Below are positions 1-43,518 of a stretch of DNA of 64,000 nt, one piece after another (within the stretch, counting starts at the first letter, position 1; each line of letters starts with the position of its first letter). The position numbers and the translations under genes are program-made. The stretch lies in sequence record NC_042018.1; one strand, given 5' to 3'. The notes below the pieces were generated by a model, which searched no databases, was not told where the DNA came from, and was given only the letters and a program-made list of their open reading frames with translations.

Positions 1-2
1 GT

Positions 3-425
3 TACATCGACGTTAAGCTCGATTCCAAGCAAGAAGATGACTTGATTCGGGACTTAACAACTTTAGGGATTAAAGCTCTACCAAAAGGGAAGTACCACTG
101 TACTGTCATTTATGACAAACGTGAGGAACTTGATAAGCCGCTGTGCGACATCGACCCTGAGCAAGTCTTTGAAGCACACGTCGTGGAGGTTAAACCACTC
201 GGAGATGCCCTGGTCTTTACTATGACGTCTAAAGATATCTATGATGAATTTAGACGATTGCAGGAAGCCGGATATCAGCACAGTTTCCCTGAGCTGTTGG
301 TTCACATGTCAATTTGCTACGACTTCAGTGCGTACGACAAGTTGAAGGTGGAACAGTTCATGGGCCGATGGATAGGCCGCAACATTCAGTTCTCTCGCGA
401 ATCGTTACAACCCGTTAAGTATTGA
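3..425 (+). CDS. hypothetical protein, 5'-truncated by window edge
   Basis: Frame is open from base 3 (YIDVKLDSKQEDDLIR...) to TGA at 425, followed by a terminator. Confidence 0.8.
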   Translation, partial: YIDVKLDSKQEDDLIRDLTTLGIKALPKGKYHCTVIYDKREELDKPLCDIDPEQVFEAHVVEVKPLGDALVFTMTSKDIYDEFRRLQEAGYQHSFPELLVHMSICYDFSAYDKLKVEQFMGRWIGRNIQFSRESLQPVKY

Positions 426-2343: not shown

Positions 2344-2745
2344 ATGAAAAAGTTTATCGCTCCACTTGTTGCTGTTCTGCTGTCTGCTTGCGCTACCCAA
2401 CCGAAGCCTGCGGTAGAAGTTACCTATGAGTGTTCCAACTTCACCATGGGTCGTATTACTTCCCTGACTGAAGCGCCGGCACCGTCAAAGATTATTCCGG
2501 TCAAGCAGGTTGTCGTTCAGAACGATGAAGGTTACTTCATTCCGAAAGGTGGTGCGTTCGAACGTGACCGCTACTACTTCTGGCTCAATGAAGATGCCAG
2601 CACACAGAAAGCCGTCAGTGGCAAATTGGCCATGACTGAAAAAGATAGCAACTTTGTTATCTATGCTTTCCGTACTCCGTACAACGGCACCAACCCGCAG
2701 GACGTTGTGGGTTACATGGCGCTGTTGGACTGCGTGAAGAAATAA
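2344..2745 (+). CDS. putative lipoprotein
   Basis: MKKFIAPLVAVLLSA-C: signal peptide with lipobox. Confidence 0.8.
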   Translation: MKKFIAPLVAVLLSACATQPKPAVEVTYECSNFTMGRITSLTEAPAPSKIIPVKQVVVQNDEGYFIPKGGAFERDRYYFWLNEDASTQKAVSGKLAMTEKDSNFVIYAFRTPYNGTNPQDVVGYMALLDCVKK

Positions 2746-2751
2746 CGTAGC

Positions 2752-2986
2752 GGGCTGGGTATCCAGCCCCTATAGAAAAGTGAAAACCATTGCCATGGTT
2801 TTAACCCAACCGGTAAGAGTCCTTTGGACCGCCTCCTGTTCGAGGCCATTTTTCTATAGTCACCTCGTTAATGCCAACACATCTGATACGTAGATGCCTT
2901 AGGAATCCTTTCTGATTCCGGGAGAAAAAGGAATTTCTCCTTCTTTTTATTCCGTGGCCTTCCCGTAGTTATCTACGGGAGGGTCC
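2752..2986. ncRNA. candidate structured non-coding RNA (eight stems, multi-arm junction)
   Basis: 284-nt ORF-free gap containing 8 inverted repeats, including a perfect 10-bp closing stem 2770-2779/2850-2859. Strand and function unknown. Confidence 0.45.
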
Positions 2987-3029
2987 ATACTACAACAATC
3001 ATTTTTATTTTTTGTAAGGAAACCGTTTC

Positions 3030-3665
3030 ATGTCTACTCCTGCCGTTACGTCCATTGCCGAAGCCATCAGTGACGTTCTGTGGCCGGACAGTATTCTGAT
3101 TGACTTTGAATCGTGCAGCCTCCAGCCTGACAGTGCACTACTCAGCTTTGGGGCATTGGCCTTTAACCGCCATCAGGTTGCCAGTGTGTCGCATTACGCC
3201 AACATCCCTGAGATGATGATTAACATCAACCTCGACCTTACTACCCAGTTCCTGCAAGGGTTTGATTTTGATAAAGACACCGCTAAATGGTGGCGGGAAA
3301 AGAACGGACACAACATCAAAGGGTTGTACATTGATCGTGTGGAACTGATCGACATGGTGACCCAACTGAATACGCTGTTAGCGACGGTGAAGAAGAACTG
3401 CAAAGACGTGGCCTTCTTCTGTCGTCATCCGCATGCTGACTACGTGTGGTTACGTACCGTGTGTGAGCGCTTAGGGGTTCGCAATCCCATCAGCTACAAC
3501 CGCATCTATGATGTGGCGACCTATGTGTTCAGCCGTACTGATAACCTGCGTGGGGTTTATGAACTGGATACGCCGCGCAGCAGTTTCCACCATGCGTTCA
3601 ATGACTGCTACCGGGATGCATTACAGGTTGCTACTGTTAACGAAAGGAAGATACTCGATGTCTAA
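3030..3665 (+). CDS. DEDDh 3'-5' exonuclease (Rv2179c/DUF5051-like exoribonuclease)
   Basis: ILIDFES (DxE), HADY, HHAFNDCYRDA (H..D) motifs. Confidence 0.8.
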   Translation: MSTPAVTSIAEAISDVLWPDSILIDFESCSLQPDSALLSFGALAFNRHQVASVSHYANIPEMMININLDLTTQFLQGFDFDKDTAKWWREKNGHNIKGLYIDRVELIDMVTQLNTLLATVKKNCKDVAFFCRHPHADYVWLRTVCERLGVRNPISYNRIYDVATYVFSRTDNLRGVYELDTPRSSFHHAFNDCYRDALQVATVNERKILDV

Positions 3666-4116
3666 GATTGCATACATGACCTATCTGGTGAATGAGATAC
3701 CGATTGTGTTTCATTCTGCGCTTATGTCGCTGGCTAAGGAGCTCGTAGCATATGAGCAACAGCTTACGATGGATGTGCTGGGAAAACAGCGTCACATGGT
3801 TCCTGTGGACTCTGTGAAGGACTTCTTTATTGAAGACAGCGTGGTTGTGGTGGCCTTTAATGAGCGGGAAGAGTTACCGGTGGGGTTCTGTAGCTATTGG
3901 GCAGAACCGACCCAGGGTCGGCTGATTATCGACACGGTTTACGTTGCTCCTGCTTACCGTCAACAAGGCATTGCCAGGGCCATGTTAGCAGGACCCCTGG
4001 ACATGGGGTTCTCACTTATTGACATTCACGCCATGGCGAATAACCCCGCAGCGTTAAAACTGTATGCGTCATTAGGATTTAAACCCTATATTACTACGAT
4101 GACGAAAGTAAATTAA
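3658..4116 (+). CDS. GNAT family N-acetyltransferase
   Basis: VYVAPAYRQQGIARAML (acetyl-CoA motif A) and NPAALKLYASLGF. Start reset to ATG 3658, overlapping the upstream stop. Confidence 0.85.
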   Translation: MSKIAYMTYLVNEIPIVFHSALMSLAKELVAYEQQLTMDVLGKQRHMVPVDSVKDFFIEDSVVVVAFNEREELPVGFCSYWAEPTQGRLIIDTVYVAPAYRQQGIARAMLAGPLDMGFSLIDIHAMANNPAALKLYASLGFKPYITTMTKVN

Positions 4117-4142
4117 TCTTTTCATTTAAGGAGACATTCCAC

Positions 4143-5144
4143 ATGTCAAGCTTAGAACAAATGTTTGATAAAGCCATGAACGAACATACTGCTTCGTTTA
4201 ATTCAAACCTAAAAACCATTAATGCCAAAGGGTGGGTAAACGATTGGGTTAACCGCCACAACGGCAAAGTTCCAATTAACTTTATCCCTTACGAAGAATT
4301 TCGTGCTCACCTAACTTCATTCTTTAAACCCGGCCACGGTCACGATGAAGCCGGTGCTGATGTTGTTGGGTTAACACTGTTTCAACATTTGATGTACAAC
4401 TTGACCAAAGTGGATATCCATGTCGAAGAAACCGTTATTGTGGAGTTAATGAATGACACCACCTTCGATAAAGATGAAGCAAAAATACCCACAGAAGTAT
4501 TAAAGCGGCTCCCCTACTGGTCGGTGCACATTCCTATCACCAGAAGCTTTAATGAAGAGGTAGACGATCCGAACGCCAATTATTATAAGTTTCTCGAGGT
4601 GTACGTCAGCCGCATTAACATCGATAATGACGACGCGTTATTAATTGACATCAATGCGATGTACAAAGATAAAATTCTGCAACACACCAGAGTGATATCA
4701 TTAAATTCCCCTACTATACGGGAGGGGTTAGAACGTCACGCCGACATGAATGACCGGCTGGATATAAACAAACACGGTGATATTTTTGACTTTACCTTAC
4801 GTCAAGTGTTTCCGGTTATTTTGTATGTGTGTTCTCAGCAAAAACAAAAGGACATTGGTAGTTCCCCCCTGACCGGGTACAGTATCAAACGAAAAGGGAA
4901 GAACTTTGTTTTAAAAGCAGCCCCTAAAGTCAAAGTGATTGAATATGGACAAGAGCTAAAAGAACAGCTTGAACGTTTCCATCAATTGCTAAAACAAGAG
5001 CGTGACTTTAAAGGCCGTATTCCCCATATTCGTAAAGCGCACTGGCACGGTTACTGGATAGGACCTCGTGTTGGTGAACGTGATTACATCTATCATTGGA
5101 TTCCGCCAGTCATTGTGTCGGGTTCTGAAGCAGAAATTAAGTAA
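4143..5144 (+). CDS. AcrVA2/FinQ-like protein
   Basis: 333 aa; IPTEVLKRLPYWSVHI, VILYVCS and C-terminal PHIRKAHWHGYW..WIPPVIV resemble AcrVA2/FinQ motifs as recalled (not searched). Confidence 0.65.
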   Translation: MSSLEQMFDKAMNEHTASFNSNLKTINAKGWVNDWVNRHNGKVPINFIPYEEFRAHLTSFFKPGHGHDEAGADVVGLTLFQHLMYNLTKVDIHVEETVIVELMNDTTFDKDEAKIPTEVLKRLPYWSVHIPITRSFNEEVDDPNANYYKFLEVYVSRINIDNDDALLIDINAMYKDKILQHTRVISLNSPTIREGLERHADMNDRLDINKHGDIFDFTLRQVFPVILYVCSQQKQKDIGSSPLTGYSIKRKGKNFVLKAAPKVKVIEYGQELKEQLERFHQLLKQERDFKGRIPHIRKAHWHGYWIGPRVGERDYIYHWIPPVIVSGSEAEIK

Positions 5145-5162: not shown

Positions 5163-5534
5163 ATGGCAACACGTATTTTTGCAGGTAGCATTGATTTAGT
5201 CACGGTGTCGTTAAACGAACGTCTGCAGCCCATGTTAAAGGGTCAGGTTATTGACTGGTTTAGCTACACCAAAGAATCAGGCTCTCAAGTTGAGTACGTC
5301 TGGGATGGCCCGGCTGTGGTGACCATTTGGGATTTGATTGTTTCAGCCAAACCCAACATTGGTAGTGGTGACGATGATGACGGGTTTATTCTCACCGAAG
5401 AAGAGGTAAAGGGATTCATTGCGGATGGTCTGGAGCAAACCACCGGGTTTGTTCGTAATAAGTTCATCAAGCTGGAATCGTTGGTGGGTCGCTTTGATTT
5501 TGACAAGCACTGCCTGGTCTTCTTCTTTTCTTAA
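5163..5534 (+). CDS. hypothetical protein
   Basis: ATG 5163 after GGAGAG RBS; 123 aa. Confidence 0.75.
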   Translation: MATRIFAGSIDLVTVSLNERLQPMLKGQVIDWFSYTKESGSQVEYVWDGPAVVTIWDLIVSAKPNIGSGDDDDGFILTEEEVKGFIADGLEQTTGFVRNKFIKLESLVGRFDFDKHCLVFFFS

Positions 5535-5548
5535 TAGTAGGTAACAAA

Positions 5549-5719
5549 ATGAAAACGAATGTTACAACAAACACCGACCCGTTTATTGGTCGTCAGGTCC
5601 CTGACAGTGAGCCGGTCGTGATGTCTAAAACTAAACTGCTGGTGATTGCCTTGGTGGCTTTCCTGACAGGGATGTGCTTTGGTGCAGCTTTCATGTTGGA
5701 ATACATCCCATGGTTATGA
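5549..5719 (+). CDS. small membrane protein (56 aa; not in ORF track)
   Basis: MKTNVTTNTDPF...LLVIALVAFLTGMCFGAAFML..., RBS AGGT, one TM segment; stop overlaps the next ATG. Confidence 0.65.
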   Translation: MKTNVTTNTDPFIGRQVPDSEPVVMSKTKLLVIALVAFLTGMCFGAAFMLEYIPWL

Positions 5720-7232: not shown

Positions 7233-7239
7233 TTCGGTG

Positions 7240-7261
7240 TCCTCCTGTTTCGGCAGGAGGA
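7240..7261 (+). terminator. intrinsic terminator
   Basis: TCCTCCTG-TTTCGG-CAGGAGGA followed by a T-rich run. Confidence 0.75.
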
Positions 7262-7328
7262 TTCTTTTCTTTGAGGTTGAATAATCGAAAACAAAGAAAA
7301 GCATAACCGCACTTATTAAGGATAAGCA

Positions 7329-7687: not shown

Positions 7688-8335
7688 ATGAGCCACTCGC
7701 TTTCTATTTCTACTGACGGAACAGTCATTACGCTGACCCGCAACGGTCAGAAGTTCGAACTCATCCTCGAAAAACAAAAAATCATGATCGCCGATAAACC
7801 GGTGCGTGCTACGCTTACTCATAACGACAAAATCATGTGTCGTATGCCGTGCGTAACCGAAGACCCGATTAAAACGCTGGTCATGGCCTACCGTATGATG
7901 AAGTGCGGCGTTATCGGTTATGACCGTAACGGTTCCTGGGATCCGCTGGCCGATTTCCGGATGGCTGTTAATCAATTCACCAAACACGATATTCAAATGA
8001 GTGCGTGGATTGAAGACGAAGACGAAAACTCCAACCGTAACTTCTACAAGCTGCCGTTCTCTAATGGCCTGCTGGCAGTAGAAACCGTGCTGGATGGTCG
8101 TAAGTACAGCGTTCGCCAGGAATGTTCACCCACATCTAACCAGATGTACTGTGTGAAGCTGGTGTTCTGCCCGCACAGCGTTTATCCGTTACAACCGGGT
8201 TATGTTGAGCAAACCATTGAAGCGCGCATGTGGTACTCTGACAGTCGTATTCTGCCGGACGCAGAAGCTATGATTGCCCAGTACGTCAAAGCCCGTAAAT
8301 ACCCTCACCCTGAATACGAAGCAGAACCCGCATAA
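7688..8335 (+). CDS. hypothetical protein
   Basis: 215 aa, RBS AAGGG. Confidence 0.8.
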   Translation: MSHSLSISTDGTVITLTRNGQKFELILEKQKIMIADKPVRATLTHNDKIMCRMPCVTEDPIKTLVMAYRMMKCGVIGYDRNGSWDPLADFRMAVNQFTKHDIQMSAWIEDEDENSNRNFYKLPFSNGLLAVETVLDGRKYSVRQECSPTSNQMYCVKLVFCPHSVYPLQPGYVEQTIEARMWYSDSRILPDAEAMIAQYVKARKYPHPEYEAEPA

Positions 8336-8343
8336 GGCCCACC

Positions 8344-8607
8344 ATGAGCATCTTTTGGATTGTTGTTCTCTATACTGTTTTGGTAATGATTCTTTGTGCG
8401 CTGGAGTATAAGGCGTATATCCGTAACGGTAAGTTCAAGAAGCGGGCCTTCGCTAAAGACTTCGTGCGGTTGTGGACGGTGGGGATGTGTATCATCCTGG
8501 CGGCCATTTGGGAAGCCTTGAAGTTTATCTTCGTCTGGGCAGGTAAAATCATTGACTGGGTCTGGGCGTTGATGAAGTTCATCGTTGCCAAAGCTCGACA
8601 AGACTAA
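8344..8607 (+). CDS. small membrane protein
   Basis: 87 aa with hydrophobic helices. Confidence 0.7.
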   Translation: MSIFWIVVLYTVLVMILCALEYKAYIRNGKFKKRAFAKDFVRLWTVGMCIILAAIWEALKFIFVWAGKIIDWVWALMKFIVAKARQD

Positions 8608-8612
8608 TCTCC

Positions 8613-8640
8613 TATTCCTCTGCCTCACAGCAGAGGAATA
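8613..8640 (+). terminator. terminator-like hairpin
   Basis: TATTCCTCTGC-CTCACA-GCAGAGGAATA. Confidence 0.6.
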
Positions 8641-8666
8641 TCCTTAAGCTAATTTAAGAGGTAATT

Positions 8667-9158
8667 ATGCAACCTATTCATGTGTTATACCAAGAGTTCA
8701 TTGAGAAGCTGCGGGCACTGATTGATTCACAAAGCAACTTCGCCAAGGTGGAATTCAAAACCGACAGCCGTTGGTTAACCGTGTGGTGTATGGTGGGTCA
8801 AAACGAAAACCTGGAACGTGAATGTGTGTACCGGGTAGAGTACGGTCACCTCGACCGCAGTAACAAGGTCAGAATGCACTTTAAAGAGATTGCAGACCTG
8901 CATGCATTCATTCGTACCGCCATCTGGAAAAATCCTCGCTACGCGACGCTGAGGGCGGATTTCAAGCACAAGGATTTCTTTCGCCAAGGCACCTTGCGTA
9001 TGTTGCGGGCAATGAAAGCCATGCACGAACCCAAAACGGCGACCACCACCGATTTCTTTAAGGGATGTAAAGGCACGGAAGATAACGGCCCGACAACGGA
9101 GTTAGTGTTGCACGTAAAGAAGGATCACGGCGGTAACGTTTTTGTTGTAGAACACTAA
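8667..9158 (+). CDS. hypothetical protein
   Basis: 163 aa, RBS AGAGGT. Confidence 0.8.
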   Translation: MQPIHVLYQEFIEKLRALIDSQSNFAKVEFKTDSRWLTVWCMVGQNENLERECVYRVEYGHLDRSNKVRMHFKEIADLHAFIRTAIWKNPRYATLRADFKHKDFFRQGTLRMLRAMKAMHEPKTATTTDFFKGCKGTEDNGPTTELVLHVKKDHGGNVFVVEH

Positions 9159-9244: not shown

Positions 9245-10726
9245 ATGGAAACCAGCATCAAGTTTAGTGAAATGCCGAAACTCGACTCTATCACTGCGGA
9301 TACCCTTATCCCAGTTGTAGGAACAGGGGAAGATGGCCAGCCTGCTAACTTCAGTATTAAGGGGTCAACCCTGTTGGCGTTTGTGGGAGAACTCGCGACG
9401 CCTGTTGGGTCAGCTAATCAACGTCCTTTCCAGGAGTGGCTGTCTCAGCTAGAACGTCGTACTACCTATGACTTCCGTCCCGTTCCAGTAATGACCAATC
9501 CTCCAGTGACGTCTCTGGTGAAATCCCAAGGGGTATCGGGTGTGTCAGTCGTTAACGGTGGCGCGGGTTATAAAGTCGGCGACAACTTGACCGTGGATGG
9601 CGGTGAGTTCGGCGTAGCTGCACGTCTGCGTGTAACGTCTGTGGATGGCGACGGTAAGATTTTGGCAGTCGCGGTACAGCTGACCGGCACGTATATTACC
9701 AAACCTGTTAACCCAGTTTCAACAACGGATGATTCTACCGGCACAGGGGCAACCTTTAACCTGACGTGGAACCCAGGCGTAGGGTCTACTATCTATAACG
9801 GTAAGACCTGGAACCGTACTGATGAAACCCTGTTTAAGTATCTGGGTTACAACATCAAGGACACCTCTTCAGGTTATCGCGGTAACGGTATCGGTAATGG
9901 TACGCAGTGTGTAATTGAATTCTTCTGTGATGCCGACGCCATTGACTTCCGCTTCATTGGCGGTAATGCTCAGTACGACCTTTACGTCGACGGACAGCGT
10001 ATCAGTGATAAACCAATTCAAACGGATTCATCCGGTGCGCCCTACATCTATAATGTCACTTGGCCGACTTCTGTGCCACGTCATTATAAACTGATGGGTA
10101 TTAACACCGGGTTTGGTGGTATCATCACTGCCCAACAGTATACTGTATGGCATCCAGGTCCACGTCGTCGTCCATTAATTTGGCAGATGGGTGACTCTTA
10201 CACCTACGGTACTGGTGCAACCCAAATCTCATTCAACGATCTCAAAGTGATGGCAGACATTCTGGGGTTTGATTCCATTGCGGACGGGATTGGAGGTAAG
10301 GGGTGGACGTCAACCGATTCCACTATTCCTCAACAGCGTGTGGCTGACAAGCTCGCTATCCTCAACGATACGCCAGAGTATGTCTTCCTCTCCCTGGGCT
10401 ATAACGACGCCGCAGCGGGCCGTTTAGAAGTACTGGAGACCAACTTCCGGGCAACGATTGCGAAGCTCAATGAAGTGGTGCCTAATGCCAAGGTTGTGGT
10501 AATTGGTCCGGCAACTCCAATGGGATCAACCAGCAAGATTACCGACATCCGTGCATCCCTTATCAAACTCAGTGCTGAATTCAACCTGATGTTTGTGGAT
10601 GTGGATAACTGGGTTAGTGCGGCGAATGCCAAGCTGTATACCCTGAGTGATAACACCCACCCTAACGACGCCGGGTATATCTACCGTGGTGTACGTTTAG
10701 CTCAAGCATTGGCGAGTCGTATCTAG
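9245..10726 (+). CDS. tail-associated SGNH/GDSL esterase (putative O-acetyl esterase tailspike)
   Basis: Blocks GDSY, GIGG, LGYND and DNTHP (DxxH); N-terminal IKFSEMP anchor-like motif and Gly-rich beta modules. Confidence 0.8.
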   Translation: METSIKFSEMPKLDSITADTLIPVVGTGEDGQPANFSIKGSTLLAFVGELATPVGSANQRPFQEWLSQLERRTTYDFRPVPVMTNPPVTSLVKSQGVSGVSVVNGGAGYKVGDNLTVDGGEFGVAARLRVTSVDGDGKILAVAVQLTGTYITKPVNPVSTTDDSTGTGATFNLTWNPGVGSTIYNGKTWNRTDETLFKYLGYNIKDTSSGYRGNGIGNGTQCVIEFFCDADAIDFRFIGGNAQYDLYVDGQRISDKPIQTDSSGAPYIYNVTWPTSVPRHYKLMGINTGFGGIITAQQYTVWHPGPRRRPLIWQMGDSYTYGTGATQISFNDLKVMADILGFDSIADGIGGKGWTSTDSTIPQQRVADKLAILNDTPEYVFLSLGYNDAAAGRLEVLETNFRATIAKLNEVVPNAKVVVIGPATPMGSTSKITDIRASLIKLSAEFNLMFVDVDNWVSAANAKLYTLSDNTHPNDAGYIYRGVRLAQALASRI

Positions 10727-10731
10727 CGTAC

Positions 10732-10739
10732 ATGCTATG
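10732..10739 (+). promoter_or_regulatory. putative late promoter (TATG)
   Basis: ATGCTATG, same as the copy at 9214. Confidence 0.45.
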
Positions 10740-10767
10740 CTCTATACAACCTCACTCTGGTGTCACT

Positions 10768-11646
10768 ATGGATAATACGTTTTCGGTCGAGTCTCGTGAC
10801 ATTGATTGTCAGCTTGACCACGCGTCACGCATCGCACAAGGAATGTGCGATACTGTCAATGGCAGTGAAGGGCTCACGGATGCCCAACTGTACCTGCACG
10901 GTATTCTGTTTGCTCATGGCATTTTACCGAACCGGGTAGAGGGCAACGAAAGTTTAATCGTGGGCTCTCTGCTCAATGAGTTCAGTAAGTTCTTTGACAT
11001 GATCTCCGATATCTCTAACGGGCTGGGCAAGTTCTTCTCAGGCGATGCGTTAACCAATGAGTTGCTGAAATCATCAAAAGCCATTGAAAGCGCCGTGACC
11101 GGTATCAAGAAGTTAGAAGGTCAACAGCAACTTAAGTCTTCGCATCAAAGTGATTTGAATAAACTGTTTCGTCGTTTCATTAATGACATGGAAGGCAACA
11201 TCAAGAAACAGGCGAAGATTTGTGTGTCCATGGAAAAGGTCGATAAAAACGTCACGGGTAACTGGAAGTACCACGCGATGGTCATGAAGCAAAGTTCCTA
11301 CCATGAAGAACTGTTGGATTGGGCAGAGAACCTGGGAACGGTATCGTCAGTGTCCGAAGCCAGTCGTATCCTTAGCAGACTCCAGTCGGTTATTAAAAAC
11401 ATGACGGGACAAATTCGGGATGCAAATAAAGCGGCACAAGACCTGGAACATAACCGTCGTCTCTTTCTGCAAGGGAAGCGGATTGAGAACAACAAAGAGA
11501 ACAAAAAGAACTTAGCACTGGCTCACACCATGACCGTTTACATGATTGACTTAATCAAGTTAACGAAGCAGGACATTGAGCTTAAGATGAAATTCATCAG
11601 TGCTTGTACCTCGCACTTAAAACCAGGTTGCTTCCAGAAGGCATAA
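10768..11646 (+). CDS. putative phiKZ-type internal head protein (paralog of 40803-41729)
   Basis: LTDAQLYLHGILFAHGILP..EGNE propeptide-like motif shared with 40803; helical; follows the late motif. Confidence 0.6.
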   Translation: MDNTFSVESRDIDCQLDHASRIAQGMCDTVNGSEGLTDAQLYLHGILFAHGILPNRVEGNESLIVGSLLNEFSKFFDMISDISNGLGKFFSGDALTNELLKSSKAIESAVTGIKKLEGQQQLKSSHQSDLNKLFRRFINDMEGNIKKQAKICVSMEKVDKNVTGNWKYHAMVMKQSSYHEELLDWAENLGTVSSVSEASRILSRLQSVIKNMTGQIRDANKAAQDLEHNRRLFLQGKRIENNKENKKNLALAHTMTVYMIDLIKLTKQDIELKMKFISACTSHLKPGCFQKA

Positions 11647-11653
11647 CGGATAT

Positions 11654-11661
11654 ATGTTATG
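11654..11661 (+). promoter_or_regulatory. putative late promoter (TATG)
   Basis: ATGTTATG. Confidence 0.55.
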
Positions 11662-11708
11662 CTTTATAACAAAGTAGCTTGACTTCTTATTTTGCAAAAG
11701 GAACTCAC

Positions 11709-12305
11709 ATGTTTGGACTCAACTCCCTCTGGGTCTTCCTGGTGCTGGCTGCTGTGATGGTGGTAGGTTACTACCGTTTCAGCGCTAAGGCCAAGAAGCC
11801 TTTCGAGATCATTACCGGGATTACCGGTTTCTTCGATGACATTCACCGTAAAGTCGAAGAAGTAATCGCTTATATTAAAACCCTGTCCAAGTACCACCTC
11901 GACCTGCATGAGCGAATATCCGGCATTCTGGATTTGTTCAGCAGTGCGCAAACCGAAAGGGCTGCCGTTGAGCAACGCTTGAAACAACACCTTACTGATC
12001 TGGTCGACCAGCGCTTCGCCGAACTTAAGGAGGGGCTGGATAAACAGACGGAACGAATATTCCACGGTCTGGACATGCATCGCAAGGTTCTGGTTACTGA
12101 AGTGACAAGTGCGCTTACCCCGCCGGAACCCGTGGTGCAACAGCTGACTCCTGAGCCGTCGAAAGACACCGAAGCGACGCCGTTTAAAGCGGCAACTGAG
12201 CTGGCGGAAGCTCCGAAAGTTGATCTGACCCAAAGCGGTCAAGCCGGGTTTGTACCCGAACCGGAAGTAAAAGCGGTGAAAGGCCGTGGGCGTAGCAAAA
12301 AGTAA
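11709..12305 (+). CDS. membrane-anchored coiled-coil protein
   Basis: ATG 11709 after AAGGAA; N-terminal TM, coiled coil, Pro/Glu linker, basic tail. Confidence 0.75.
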   Translation: MFGLNSLWVFLVLAAVMVVGYYRFSAKAKKPFEIITGITGFFDDIHRKVEEVIAYIKTLSKYHLDLHERISGILDLFSSAQTERAAVEQRLKQHLTDLVDQRFAELKEGLDKQTERIFHGLDMHRKVLVTEVTSALTPPEPVVQQLTPEPSKDTEATPFKAATELAEAPKVDLTQSGQAGFVPEPEVKAVKGRGRSKK

Positions 12306-38522: not shown

Positions 38523-39362
38523 ATGAAACAATATTTAGATATGGCGCGTCATGTACTGGAAACCGGCGTTGAAAAGAAAGACCGTACCGGCACAGGGACC
38601 CTGTCTGTATTTGGTTACCAAATGCGTTTTGACCTGGGTGAGGGTTTCCCGCTGGTGACCACGAAGAAGTGCCATATGCGTTCTATTATCCATGAACTGC
38701 TGTGGTTCCTTAAAGGCGACACCAACATTCAATACCTCACTGACAACGGTGTCACCATTTGGGATGAGTGGGCGCTGAAAGAAGACGAAATCGTCGAATA
38801 CCCAATGTCCAATTCTGACCGTGTGGGTTATGCAGTAACCAACGGTCTATGGTCTGATGGGGGTTCTCGCTTAATTGCCAAACTTAACAAGCTGGGTGAG
38901 GAAGAAGGAAACCTCTACCTGGATACGCTGGGCGTGCCGCGCAGTGAGAAATATGTTAATCGTAAAAAGGGCGACCTGGGTCCAGTTTACGGCAAGCAGT
39001 GGCGTAACTGGGACGCAACCTCCCGTCGTGGTATGATTGCCGGTCAGGCCGAAAGTATCGACCAAATTGCAGTGGTCATGGATCAGCTGAGAAAAGACCC
39101 TGATAGTCGCCGTATCATCGTGTCAGCCTGGAACGTTGCAGAGCTGTCGCAAATGGCCTTGGCTCCGTGTCATGCCTTCTTCCAGTTCTATACTCGTGAA
39201 CTGAGTTTTGAAGAGCGTGAGAAATGGGTCATTATGAACGATGAAGATGAGAAGCTGGAAAACTATCTTAACGAGAGAATGGTTGACAAAGAGCTTAACG
39301 AGATGTGGATGAACGATCGTAACGTTCCAACTCGAGCGCTGTCTTGTCAACTCTATCAGCGT
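38523..39362 (+). CDS. thyA: thymidylate synthase, exon 1 (280 codons)
   Basis: [39 protein letters not shown] (catalytic Cys); ends CQLYQR. Confidence 0.93.
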
Positions 39363-40451
39363 AAACAACACTGCGCCTTCTAGTGGTGACACTAGTCGAA
39401 GAACACTCCCTAAAACGGGAAGAACTCCAATTGGAGAGAATCCGTTACTAAGTAATCCATTTCCAGGCATACTTCTTTTTTAAAAAGGAGGTTGTTATGG
39501 AAGCTGTGTGTTATATCCTCTCTTTTAAGAAAGAAGGAAAAGTGAAAACGTACATTGGTCATACGGTTGAGTTTGATAAACGTTTAGCTCGTCATCTCAG
39601 AGAGCTTAAGCAAGGTAACCACCACAACAGTGAGTTACAAGCTTTATATAACGAAGGCTGGGAATTTGACAGCCACAAGCTCATTCCTGTTAAGAATAAA
39701 GTTTTGGCTCACAAGTTAGAGCAGGAACATATTCTCAATAGCCAAAATAATCCTGACGTCGTCAATATTGAATGTGGTAATGACACTTACACCAACAATC
39801 CTCGTAAAGAGGAAATACGGGTGAAACTGATTACTCATTTAAAGAACTTCATGGACAGTCTTTCTGAGGAAGAAAAGAAAGAAGTCTATGGACGGGTTGG
39901 CGAAGAAAATGGAATGTACGGTTCTACTCACTCCGAAGAAGCACGCAAAATAATCAGTGAAAAAGTTAAGGCTTATTACGAGACACATGACGCACCTGCT
40001 AAAGGTAGAAAGCTTACCGATGAGCAACGTGCTCTTTTGTCCATTCTTGCATCCAATCGTACCGGTGAGTCTAATCCCTTCTATGGTAAGACTCATAGTG
40101 ACGAAACCCGCAAGAAAATAGCCGAAGCTAAAAAGGGTAACCTCCCTGTTAACTCGAAGCAGGTATCGATTAACGGTGTGGTTTATAAAAGTATGTCAGA
40201 AGGTGCGAGAGATGTTGGTGTTAATCCAACCGTTGCTCTTTGGCGTATTAAAAGCGTTAACCCGAAGTATGCTGATTGGAAATGGGTTTAAATGTCCAAC
40301 GACCAGAACGTGATTGTTCGTAGGGTTCAAGTGAACTCGAAATGGGAGAGCTTCTGCATATGCAGAAGGTGATATGGTCTGATCTGCATGGTGACATGCA
40401 GCTGCAAGTAATGTTGCGGGGTGGGAGTAACGAACCCACCTGAACATATTG
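39363..40451 (+). mobile_element. group I self-splicing intron (1089 nt) in thyA
   Basis: 5' exon ends in U and intron ends in G. P1 GCGU/GCGC(39373-76); P10 CACU(39369-72)/AGUG; P7 GACCA(40301-05)/UGGUC(40375-79); P8 hairpin 40351-68. Splicing restores YQR|[11 protein letters not shown]. Confidence 0.9.
39497..40291 (+). CDS. intron-encoded GIY-YIG homing endonuclease (I-TevI-like architecture)
   Basis: CYI..YIG, KRLARH, HHNSELQ..YN, LEQ..I, NUMOD3-like repeats (GMYGSTHSEEAR, PFYGKTHSDETR), C-terminal HTH. Confidence 0.9.
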   Translation: MEAVCYILSFKKEGKVKTYIGHTVEFDKRLARHLRELKQGNHHNSELQALYNEGWEFDSHKLIPVKNKVLAHKLEQEHILNSQNNPDVVNIECGNDTYTNNPRKEEIRVKLITHLKNFMDSLSEEEKKEVYGRVGEENGMYGSTHSEEARKIISEKVKAYYETHDAPAKGRKLTDEQRALLSILASNRTGESNPFYGKTHSDETRKKIAEAKKGNLPVNSKQVSINGVVYKSMSEGARDVGVNPTVALWRIKSVNPKYADWKWV

Positions 40452-40748
40452 AGTGCTGACGTCTTCCTCGGCGTGCCGTTTAACATCGCCAGCTACGCGC
40501 TGCTGATTCACATGGTTGCTCAACAGGTTAACATGGTGCCTGAAGAGTTCGTGTGGACAGGCGGTGATGTGCATCTGTACTCTAACCACCTGGAACAGAT
40601 TAAAGAACAGCTGACCCGTGAACCACGTCCGCTGCCAAAACTGGTTATCAAACATAAGCCGGCCTCTATCTTTGAATATAACTTCATTGACTTTGAGCTG
40701 CAGGATTATGATTCACATCCGACCATCAAAGCACCGGTCGCGATTTAA
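40452..40748 (+). CDS. thyA: thymidylate synthase, exon 2 (98 aa)
   Basis: [40 protein letters not shown]. Confidence 0.93.
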
Positions 40749-41838: not shown

Positions 41839-43518
41839 ATGACCGACATGTTTACTCCATGTAATAGCAACGACATCGATTTCAACAAGCTGGCACCGCA
41901 GACGTTCTATAAAGGTGATGAAGTTCGAGTGATTGTTGACCATGTGGTTAAAGAAGTGGAAGCGATGGTAACATCGACCATGGGCCCGAACGGTCGTCTG
42001 GCGGTAATCAGTTACGGTACCGAACCCAAGACCACCAAAGACGGCGTCACTGTAGCGCGCAGCATTAAGTTCACCAACGAAGCTGCCGAGTACATCAACC
42101 GTATCATCACTGAGCCGGCTCTGAAAACCGACGAAGAGTGTGGCGATGGTACCACGACAACAATCTTCTTAACCAAGCTGTTGTACGATCTGATGATTGA
42201 ACACAACACCTTCCTGAAACATAAACGCATTGAAGAAATCGTGCAGTTTATGATTCTTAAACTCAAAGAGATGGCTATTCTGCCGGACGTGAACAGCGAA
42301 GAGCTAGCAGCGTTGGCGTTAACCAGTAGTAACAACGACCAGGCCATTGCGACCACGGTAGTACAAACGTACCGTGATTCTGAAACCGGGTTCCCACACA
42401 TTGAGTTGCGTTCTGGTAGCCAGCCGCATGACGTGGTAGAACCTATTGCTGGTTTACCGCTGCGCATGAAGTTCGCTAACGCCGCGTTCAGTCGTTACGG
42501 TAACGGCGAGAACACCACGCTGACAGATTACGTGGCTGTGGGTGTGGATGCATTGTTGAGCGTTCCTAATGACGACGTTGGCAAGGTGTATCTCGAAGCG
42601 CTGAAAGAGCTGGCTGATAAATACCCGAACCGTCCTATTCTGTTAATTGGTCGCAGCATTGAAATCGATCTGTGCAACCTGGTGATGCAAGTTAACCGCC
42701 ACAAGAACTCCTGGATTATTCCGGTAACCACTGGGCTGGGCGGTACGCTGGCAACCTTGCTGTTGGGCGATATCTTAACGGTGCTGGGTGGTAAGCTGGT
42801 GACCTCGGTTAGCGAAGTGGCGTCTGTGGAATTAATCCCGTCGTCAGATGAGCTGGTGTTGGGTTCTGACCGTGGGTTGGTAACTAAGCTGACCGCTGAA
42901 TCTCAAGAGCGTGTGAATGCACGTATTGCAGAAGTTCAGGAAACCTTAAACCAGCTACAACAGGCTGACCGTTTCAGCTTACGTTCTCGTTTCACTGAAA
43001 GTCGTATCCGTGATTTGAAAGGCGAACTGATTGTTATCTATGTAGGTGGCGAAACCCAGTCCGAAGTCAAAGAGCGCATCGACCGTTTCGAAGACGTAAA
43101 CAAAGCGGTACGCAGTGCACTGGATAACGGCATCCTGCCGGGGTCGGGCTATGCCATGCGTGAACTGGGAACGGAAGTTATGCGTAACTTCGATAACGAA
43201 GAAGATCTCGAACTGGTGGGGGATATCTTCAATATCTGTTATCAACAATACTTCCGTCTATTTGGTTCGTTGGGTCTCTTTGATGCCCATCGTTATCTTG
43301 AACTGGTGGACCAAATGGATGTGGATACTCTGGGCAGTGAGTTCAGTCGTTACATTAACCTGGCAACGGGTGAAGAAGGTCTGCCGCATGAAATCGGTGT
43401 CTTCGATACTGCGTATGCTTCTATCACCGCATTGCGTGGTGGTCTGAAGACGGCGAAGATTCTGGCGCAAACCAGCACCATTCTGCTGGGTAGCAAACTG
43501 GGCTCTCGTCAATTCTAA
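41839..43518 (+). CDS. groEL: phage-encoded GroEL-like chaperonin
   Basis: STMGPNG, TTKDGVTVA, GDGTTT, GGET..EVKE..DR.ED, GILPGSG; 559 aa, no GGM tail. Confidence 0.92.
   Translation: MTDMFTPCNSNDIDFNKLAPQTFYKGDEVRVIVDHVVKEVEAMVTSTMGPNGRLAVISYGTEPKTTKDGVTVARSIKFTNEAAEYINRIITEPALKTDEECGDGTTTTIFLTKLLYDLMIEHNTFLKHKRIEEIVQFMILKLKEMAILPDVNSEELAALALTSSNNDQAIATTVVQTYRDSETGFPHIELRSGSQPHDVVEPIAGLPLRMKFANAAFSRYGNGENTTLTDYVAVGVDALLSVPNDDVGKVYLEALKELADKYPNRPILLIGRSIEIDLCNLVMQVNRHKNSWIIPVTTGLGGTLATLLLGDILTVLGGKLVTSVSEVASVELIPSSDELVLGSDRGLVTKLTAESQERVNARIAEVQETLNQLQQADRFSLRSRFTESRIRDLKGELIVIYVGGETQSEVKERIDRFEDVNKAVRSALDNGILPGSGYAMRELGTEVMRNFDNEEDLELVGDIFNICYQQYFRLFGSLGLFDAHRYLELVDQMDVDTLGSEFSRYINLATGEEGLPHEIGVFDTAYASITALRGGLKTAKILAQTSTILLGSKLGSRQF

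Follow-up and report, generated by a model that had tools for sequence, protein, structure and literature searches.

AcrVA2, a protein of a Moraxella bovoculi prophage (PDB 7CI1/7CI2), binds the N-terminal peptide (LSKT) of nascent Cas12a, leading to loss of the cas12a mRNA, and this effect is independent of promoter and codons (bioRxiv 10.1101/2022.11.29.518452). In the same study, residues H286, R288 and H291 were shown to be required for mRNA down-regulation, and mutation of W79 and D89 weakened the protein's activity to a moderate degree. The C-terminal part of AcrVA2 is reported to bind ribosomes/polysomes, and the mRNA to be degraded by a recruited cellular ribonuclease (RNase) rather than by AcrVA2 itself (reviewed in PMC13728456). 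Here, we describe a relative of AcrVA2, the 333-amino acid (aa) protein gp126, encoded in a 64-kb window (64,000 nucleotides, the whole stretch of DNA that was analysed) of Erwinia phage vB_EamM_RisingSun (MF459646 / NC_042018, 235,108 bp; hereafter RisingSun). The window corresponds to positions ~124001-188000 of that record with 100% identity. An earlier note, made from the letters of this DNA alone, had described the protein as AcrVA2/FinQ-like, had placed it in a probable nucleus-forming enterobacterial phage, and had suggested that it silences a host protein other than Cas12a. The analysis presented here establishes that gp126 is a genuine but distant member of the AcrVA2 family, and suggests that it is a translation-coupled silencer whose target is not Cas12a.

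A second described relative is FinQ, a fertility inhibitor of IncI-type conjugative plasmids that does not require Cas12a and reportedly reduces the mRNA of the genes it targets (bioRxiv 10.1101/2022.11.29.518452). FinQ is plasmid-borne and has the F transfer operon as its target; on an IncI-gamma/K1 plasmid, its gene is flanked by excA and trbA. gp126, in contrast, is a phage gene without a conjugation context. AcrVA2 and FinQ have similar C termini and divergent N termini (bioRxiv 10.1101/2022.11.29.518452). AcrVA2-like proteins in huge phages were noted in 2020 by Al-Shayeb et al. (PMC7162821), and homologues have been described from plasmids and from “megaphages”, as a rule in the absence of Cas12a, such that other targets are probable (bioRxiv 10.1101/2022.11.29.518452). 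Marino et al. drew an analogy between AcrVA2 and the autoregulation of mammalian tubulin, where a factor reads the nascent N-terminal peptide and the mRNA that encodes it decays (bioRxiv 10.1101/2022.11.29.518452). The tubulin system is eukaryotic and has no homology to gp126, such that any likeness would be one of mechanism only, the mechanism of gp126 being itself a proposal.

gp126 Is a Distant Member of the AcrVA2 Family

gp126 is a single intact open reading frame (ORF) at 4143..5144 on the + strand, stop codon included, that begins with ATG. It encodes the 333 aa given in the earlier note and contains every motif quoted there, namely TK at residues 88-89, PTEVLKRLPYWSVHI at 116-130, LYVCS at 227-231, PHIRKAHWHGYW at 294-305, and WIPPVIV at 319-325. 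The sequence reads as having a ribosome-binding site, AAGGAG, at 4128-4133 (+), 9 nt 5' of the ATG. Evidence that this ORF belongs to the AcrVA2 family came from both sequence and predicted structure. The precomputed Pfam tag PF26125 (“AcrVA2-like”) is attached to gp126 itself and to all its close relatives, a phmmer search of the PDB matched query residues 114-327 to AcrVA2 (7ci1; E 8.3e-12), and the PHROG match is phrog_6160 (E 3.6e-86); matches of this strength lie well outside what chance would produce. A profile search started from gp126 reached 3,181 representatives of clusters at 50% with E<=1e-3, and 1,737 with E<=1e-10. Ninety-six sequences from this search make up the family alignment A2, on which all residue column counts given below rest; a word search based on an alignment brought up no named members. 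The A2 profile matched 7ci1 over its full length (E 1.4e-48), with profile positions 12-321 of 328 falling on chain residues 9-319 of 323.

Structure prediction led to the same assignment. The AlphaFold2 model of gp126 has a mean predicted local distance difference test score (pLDDT) of 88.6 and a predicted template modelling score (pTM) of 0.87. A Foldseek search of the PDB with this model returned only AcrVA2 (7ci1/7ci2) as a match, with an E value of 1.4e-13, a probability of 1.00 and a template modelling (TM) score of 0.56-0.62 over ~335 columns; the next PDB match had an E value of 0.14, and nothing else fell below 0.1. The model has the three-domain fold of AcrVA2. In the viral structure library BFVD, fold matches with E values of 1e-11 to 5e-18 were to proteins from phages of Dickeya and Erwinia and from uncultured phages, all of them uncharacterised. 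Fold matches to the ribosome hibernation factor HPF (Foldseek E 0.26-0.8) were not significant and were not used, a 22-residue match to dCTP deaminase (E 0.05-0.14) was judged to be due to chance, and when gp126 was scanned against local copies of Pfam, NCBIfam and PADLOC, no relevant match emerged. The likeness to AcrVA2 put forward in the earlier note is thus borne out by family tag, profile and fold.

The two proteins are alike in size (~322 aa for AcrVA2) as well as in family and in their three-part architecture, and both are carried by mobile elements. Differences between them are substantial. Sequence identity is 17-19%. AcrVA2 comes from a prophage, whereas gp126 is encoded by a lytic, chimallin-encoding jumbo phage of a host without described Cas12a, and no AcrVA1-type partner gene adjoins it. 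Purifying selection on gp126 is evident from a comparison with its orthologue in a related phage genome, L012 (82% identical), for which the nonsynonymous rate (dN) is 0.10 and the ratio to the synonymous rate (dN/dS) is ~0.05, with dS saturated; the ratio is lowest in the C-terminal module. Because of this low ratio, gp126 is considered a functional gene under strong purifying selection, not a relic.

A tblastn search of 50,697 phage records with gp126 found homologues in 77. The majority belong to jumbo phages of Erwinia (54), Klebsiella, Serratia and Dickeya and are 22-27% identical to gp126, and a few belong to phages with small genomes that infect Shewanella, Leptospira and Pasteurella; plasmids of many phyla also carry homologues. 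The phage AcrVA2-like proteins used for comparison (Shewanella phage vB_SbaS_Y11 ORF43, the huge-phage clusters of Al-Shayeb et al., and the proteins of Erwinia, Dickeya, Klebsiella and Serratia jumbo phages) share family and fold with gp126, are uncharacterised, and mostly come from hosts not known for Cas12a. They differ from gp126 in genome position and neighbours, as does, for example, gp231 of Erwinia phage Special G. A scan of IMG/VR for RisingSun-like loci returned RisingSun itself alone. The gp126 sequence recurred nearly in full in four metatranscriptome runs from food fermentation (word share 0.80-1.00; from RNA or carried-over DNA) and in part in a root metagenome (word share 0.48), which suggests that orchards are not the only habitat of a RisingSun-like phage.

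A Conserved C-Terminal Module Is Joined to a Variable Part

Model, isoelectric point (pI), column counts and segment identities together divide gp126 into three regions. Residues 1-113 (4143..4481, +) form an acidic, mostly helical N-terminal region, residues 114-240 (4482..4862, +) form a middle region of beta-sheet and helix, and residues 241-333 (4863..5141, +) form a basic C-terminal module that is the best conserved of the three. The pI is 5.2 for the N-terminal third and 9.9 for the C-terminal third. In the model, helices extend to ~residue 103 and are followed by the beta-sheet and helices of the middle region, and then by short C-terminal strands that bear a block of His, Arg and Trp residues, which gp126 has in common with FinQ.

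The His-rich C-terminal motif to which the earlier note had drawn attention corresponds to residues that are functionally important in AcrVA2. In alignments to 7ci1, the chain numbering of which, counted from the alignments, is that of the AcrVA2 paper plus 1, H295-x-R297-x-x-H300 of gp126 (5025..5042, +) falls on AcrVA2 H286/R288/H291. Each of the three residues is kept in 95 of the 96 aligned family members, and with H302 included the set is near-invariant (94-95/96). In the model, the motif sits in beta strands 295-297 and 300-306.

Conservation is distributed unevenly along the protein. Residues 291-327 are 77-94% identical across the RisingSun-like clade. When members of this clade (P0003-P0008) are compared to gp126, identity is 77-89% in the C-terminal module, 25-39% in residues 46-113, and 20-37% in residues 136-215; the last of these is the most variable part, and P116, P124 and W126 are conserved at the start of the middle region. 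Family-wide, the share of the top residue per column peaks at 0.64 in residues 301-320 and is lowest, at 0.16-0.17, in residues 1-20, 61-80 and 201-220. By sequence, gp126 combines a variable part with an effector module that is conserved, in agreement with the published picture of AcrVA2 and FinQ.

Kinship of gp126 with FinQ

Direct tblastn searches from gp126, or from a protein of Erwinia phage Special G labelled “FinQ”, did not reach E. coli FinQ. A homologue of gp126 on a Providencia plasmid (E 2e-8) provided a bridge, as tblastn from this protein reached annotated finQ genes with an E value of 4e-12. The same search matched 744 plasmid records, 611 of them conjugative, with finQ-labelled genes in Escherichia, Salmonella, Shigella and Klebsiella. 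A FinQ ORF of 363 aa from one such plasmid (L011:2255-3346; NZ_CP042886.1, IncI-gamma/K1, from a surface-water E. coli) was then compared directly. It matched the A2 profile with an hhalign probability of 99.9% (E 3.3e-37, 239 columns), and pairwise BLASTP aligned it to gp126 over residues 51-326 with 23% identity (E 4e-11). The N-terminal ~85 residues do not align. These data show that the kinship between AcrVA2, FinQ and gp126 is real, as the earlier note had maintained for FinQ.

The annotated start of this FinQ also merits comment. The Prokaryotic Genome Annotation Pipeline (PGAP) gives FinQ on NZ_CP042886.1 as 259 aa (locus positions 2567-3346), yet the full ORF has 363 aa and a published length for FinQ is 361 aa. 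Sequence 5' of the PGAP start aligns with the family, from FinQ residue 86 in hhalign and from locus position 2501 in tblastn. Because the family alignment extends upstream of the annotated start, that start has probably been set too far downstream.

The Gene Is Replaced in Phage Joad and Exchanged among Related Phages

Five RisingSun-like genomes share a common gene order: dihydrofolate reductase (DHFR), an Acb1-like gene, three further genes, an Rv2179c-like exoribonuclease, a GNAT acetyltransferase, 0-3 extra genes, and the AcrVA2-like gene, 3' of which lies a variable accessory region. In RisingSun, the exoribonuclease and acetyltransferase are gp124 (Rv2179c-like 3'-5' exoribonuclease, Pfam E 3.9e-13) and gp125 (GNAT), at 3030..4116 (+), identified from Pfam and synteny. 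They form an overlapping pair that is conserved upstream of the slot in 6/6 RisingSun-like genomes, phage Joad included. Judged by neighbouring genes, Joad is the phage most closely related to RisingSun, followed by L004, then by L012 and L005, and lastly by L013.

Joad fills the slot with a different gene. The flanking proteins of Joad are mostly 92-99% identical to those of RisingSun. DNA homology between the two phages continues up to position 4147, and so includes the ribosome-binding site and the letters ATGTC, and resumes between 5147 and the ATG of RisingSun gp127 at 5163; blastn, a read-out of the junctions and the Joad annotation all indicate that the segment 4148..5162 (+) has no counterpart in Joad. 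The AAGGAG site is identical base for base in the two phages, despite the different ORF downstream. The slot in Joad holds an unrelated 162-aa gene, also named gp127 (L002:4143-4631). This Joad protein had no Pfam, PHROG or PADLOC match, occurred in no other phage record, and matched only itself among 5.8 billion protein clusters; its single-sequence AlphaFold2 model is poor (pLDDT 44.9). Since the more distant relatives all carry an AcrVA2-like gene in the slot, the comparison indicates that presence of that gene is the older state and that Joad has undergone an ORF-for-ORF replacement. The gp124/gp125 pair does not depend on the AcrVA2-like gene, because Joad has the pair too. No repeats were found flanking the gp126 cassette.

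Both occupants of the slot are misannotated. GenBank and RefSeq label gp126 “putative mycothiosynthase”, and the same label is attached to Joad gp127. Neither protein has similarity to GNAT or MshD, and the true GNAT protein is the neighbour, gp125. The public label is wrong in both phages and needs correcting.

Additional evidence for mobility of the gene came from comparing gp126 with its flanks. The L012 copy is 82% identical to gp126, with flanks that are 29-77% identical, whereas the L004 copy is 49% identical, with flanks that are 59-94% identical. Because the similarity of gp126 is incongruent with that of the backbone, these comparisons point to exchange of AcrVA2-like alleles between related phages. 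In composition, gp126 also stands out: it has a GC content of 41.5%, and its GC content at third codon positions (GC3) is 43%, compared to 52-61% in neighbouring genes.

gp120, six genes upstream of gp126, begins just before the window (L001:2992-3426) and is represented in it by the 3' part at 1..425 (+). It is labelled “RNA ligase” and matches the Pfam family Acb1 (PF23474, an anti-CBASS 2H phosphoesterase) with an E value of 2.4e-13 and a score of 50.5 bits, the cutoff being 27. In three relatives, the syntenic gene also carries the Acb1 tag. gp120 is thus probably an anti-CBASS gene. Three genes upstream of gp126 lies a Cor-like superinfection-exclusion gene (phrog_1119, E 9.4e-12).

RisingSun Has the Gene Content of a Nucleus-Forming Phage

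The placement of gp126 in a nucleus-forming enterobacterial phage, as put forward in the earlier note, agrees with the gene content of RisingSun. In tblastn searches, RisingSun gp28 matched the “nuclear shell protein” of Pseudomonas phage EL with 48% identity across 95% of the gp28 sequence (E ~1e-161), and further matches were to OBP and to a gene labelled “chimallin”. Direct phmmer (PDB) and Pfam searches with gp28 gave no chimallin match. RisingSun gp17 matched PhuZ-type tubulins in the PDB (tubulin/FtsZ, E 5.6e-14; phiKZ039, E 2.1e-10; PhuZ201, E 4.3e-09), and at least four fragments are annotated as “RNA polymerase beta subunit”, by annotation alone. Four Enterobacter phages described as close to RisingSun belong to the chimallin-encoding clade and were themselves observed by microscopy to form a nucleus (bioRxiv 10.1101/2024.10.29.620934). 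By homology, the description of RisingSun as a chimallin- and PhuZ-encoding jumbo phage of the nucleus-forming type holds.

Proposed Function and Target of gp126

We consider it reasonably probable that gp126 is a translation-coupled, protein-specific silencer that acts in the cytoplasm on a target other than Cas12a, likely a defence component. An AcrVA2-like mechanism is proposed because gp126 retains the AcrVA2 fold together with the functional residues and a basic C-terminal module, and is under purifying selection. gp126 would act where the host ribosomes are, in the cytoplasm and not inside the phage nucleus. Its fast-evolving N-terminal and middle parts may recognise a single target protein by way of a short peptide leaving the ribosome, and the conserved basic C-terminal module, with its HxRxxH residues, would engage the translating ribosome. 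A cellular RNase would then destroy the mRNA of the target. Most likely, this target is a protein that must be made during infection, since a block on synthesis cannot remove proteins that already exist; an inducible or continuously renewed component of host defence is favoured. A host defence target is favoured because the probable anti-CBASS gene lies nearby and because the behaviour of gp126 is that of an accessory, fast-evolving and exchangeable gene.

The general idea that AcrVA2 homologues have targets other than Cas12a is not new, having already been published (bioRxiv 10.1101/2022.11.29.518452). The interpretation given in the earlier note is partly supported by these data, in that its identification of the family, of the FinQ relationship, of the His-rich motif and of the type of phage is correct; silencing of a different host protein would be a further proposal. 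Its reasoning lacked one point, which is that a block on biogenesis spares whatever proteins the cell already contains at the time a lytic phage infects it.

Several observations weigh against a translation-coupled silencer of host defence. One is that just made, in that a biogenesis block cannot clear the defence proteins present at phage entry (bioRxiv 10.1101/2022.11.29.518452). Joad infects E. amylovora without an AcrVA2-like gene, and gp126 is accordingly dispensable on that host. The adjacency of Acb1 is merely suggestive, as housekeeping genes such as DHFR lie in the same region. Two AcrVA2 residues at which mutation impairs function moderately are replaced in gp126: W79 corresponds to gp126 Y85 (a column with W in 88, Y in 5, F in 2 and Q in 1 of the 96 sequences), and D89 to E95 (D in 58, N in 15, E in 10, and others). 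These replacements are conservative, yet they are not identities. A complex prediction for gp126 with the ribosomal proteins uL23 and uL29 gave no answer, as its score came from the ribosomal proteins, and counts as evidence neither way. gp126 and all its jumbo-phage homologues are known from sequence and model alone.

The main alternative to a host defence target, given the FinQ precedent and the Cor-like gene, is a protein of a rival mobile element. The mechanism would be the same, and the silenced protein would belong to a co- or superinfecting phage, to a prophage that has been induced or to a plasmid resident in the cell, amounting to FinQ-style exclusion at the level of translation. FinQ, shown above to be a homologue, lowers the mRNA of F-plasmid transfer genes (bioRxiv 10.1101/2022.11.29.518452), and the plasmid records with FinQ-type genes are largely conjugative. 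A biogenesis block is well suited to proteins made de novo, as those of any incoming element are, and the allele exchange among related phages fits competition between phages that co-circulate. While these points are consistent with a rival-element target, the explanation is weakened by the lack of a named candidate, whether rival or target, and by the absence of an obvious gain for a lytic phage in blocking conjugation; moreover, the nearest clearly assigned neighbour, Acb1, is directed against host defence. A rival-element target is therefore the less likely choice, with an appreciable chance of being correct.

A different possibility concerns the effector step, where gp126 might itself be a ribonuclease, its C-terminal His/Arg residues forming the active site, instead of serving as an adaptor for a cellular RNase. 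The near-invariance of H295, R297, H300 and H302 could be read in this way, the spacing from R297 to H302 happens to fit R-x4-H, and His/Arg catalytic sets are common in metal-independent RNases. Such an activity is nevertheless improbable. AcrVA2 is reported not to cleave mRNA and to recruit a cellular enzyme instead (PMC13728456), and reportedly bears no resemblance to known enzymes (bioRxiv 10.1101/2022.11.29.518452). The motif of gp126 lies in beta strands in the model rather than in a helical HEPN-type fold, and the Foldseek search of the PDB found no nuclease.

Regulation of the phage's own expression, such as co-translational shut-off of an early phage protein, appears still more improbable. 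Phage mRNAs are translated in the cytoplasm, the site where such a factor would act, and phages do encode regulators that act on their own genes at the level of translation or mRNA, T4 RegA and RegB being examples. The gene is not part of the core, however, given that Joad, with flanking proteins 92-99% identical, has an unrelated gene instead, and its alleles have been traded irrespective of the backbone, a pattern incompatible with a regulator that had co-adapted to a phage target. Finally, a true anti-CRISPR role against Cas12a, as for AcrVA2, can be set aside as the least credible reading despite the common family and C-terminal functional residues, because the CRISPR repertoire described for E. 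amylovora consists of type I-E and a remnant I-F array, without mention of Cas12 or type V (PMC9004355), identity to AcrVA2 is low and the putative recognition parts have diverged, the chimallin/PhuZ nucleus machinery shields the phage DNA from DNA-targeting nucleases, and the family occurs mostly where Cas12a is absent (bioRxiv 10.1101/2022.11.29.518452). The premise of the earlier note that Cas12a is not the target was, on these grounds, reasonable.

Other Features of the Region

Terminator-like hairpins occur at 2822-2941, in a 285-nt gap before gp124, and at 7239-7262, just after gp131. These would bracket gp124-gp131, gp126 included, as a possible single transcription unit, although shuffled sequence is expected to yield as many sites of this kind. 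Counts of sigma-70 promoters and terminators in the window likewise equalled the shuffled expectation, and Rfam and tRNA scans of the window found nothing at the gathering threshold.

Variation between RisingSun and its relatives is not confined to the slot. gp128 (5549-5719), which is 56 aa long and has a stretch of hydrophobic residues in its C-terminal part, is 70% identical in RisingSun and Joad, compared to 92-99% for its neighbours, and represents a second local hot spot just 3' of the swapped gene. Joad has an HNH endonuclease gene (L002:277-1209) between its homologues of gp121 and gp122, and RisingSun lacks this gene. The cargo downstream of the AcrVA2-like gene also varies. L012 (6159-8457) and L013 have NadR-like (AAA_28 / CTP_transf_like) and nicotinamide mononucleotide (NMN) transporter genes, and L005 (11842-12939) has a NadR-like gene. 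The L013 cargo (7846-8946, 10229-12067) also includes a gene for a YadA-like trimeric autotransporter adhesin.

Further into the window, at 38523-40748, thymidylate synthase is annotated in two pieces (Pfam model positions 1-171 and 169-266) with an I-TevI-like GIY-YIG/NUMOD3 homing endonuclease gene between them. A group I intron signal (RF00028) was detected below threshold at 40157-40401 (19.9 bits, E 0.022), and the interruption looks like a T4 td-type intron. gp190 (41839-43518) is annotated as a GroEL-type chaperonin; phage EL, the owner of the shell protein closest to gp28, is known for a chaperonin of its own.

Significance

To our knowledge, AcrVA2 is the only bacterial protein so far found to read a nascent peptide and have the corresponding mRNA destroyed. 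We know of almost no members of its family in hosts with Cas12a, and of no target besides Cas12a other than the F transfer genes affected by FinQ. The curated AcrVA2-like family, its members in huge phages (PMC7162821), and the idea of targets other than Cas12a (bioRxiv 10.1101/2022.11.29.518452) were already known. The annotation correction, the direct test of FinQ, the modular conservation at the level of the clade, the swap in Joad and the incongruence between gene and backbone are new here.

A broader proposal is offered more tentatively than that for gp126 as a translation-coupled silencer, namely that AcrVA2-family genes in nucleus-forming jumbo phages may be exchangeable, addressed silencers carried as ORF-sized cassettes, with gp126 directed against a non-CRISPR target from inducible Erwinia defence or from a rival phage. 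The DNA of such phages is shielded, while their mRNAs and proteins are in the same cytoplasm as those of the host. Each silencer would pair an invariant module that engages the ribosome with a quickly changing recognition part, and related phages would trade alleles to keep pace with different targets. If this is true, the target of gp126 would be the first for the family that is neither Cas12a nor of plasmid origin. RisingSun and Joad are a natural pair on the same host that differ cleanly, ORF for ORF, within closely matching flanks, and expression profiling of the two could reveal the first new target. The identity of that target would show which cytoplasmic threat matters to a phage whose DNA lies inside a protein shell.

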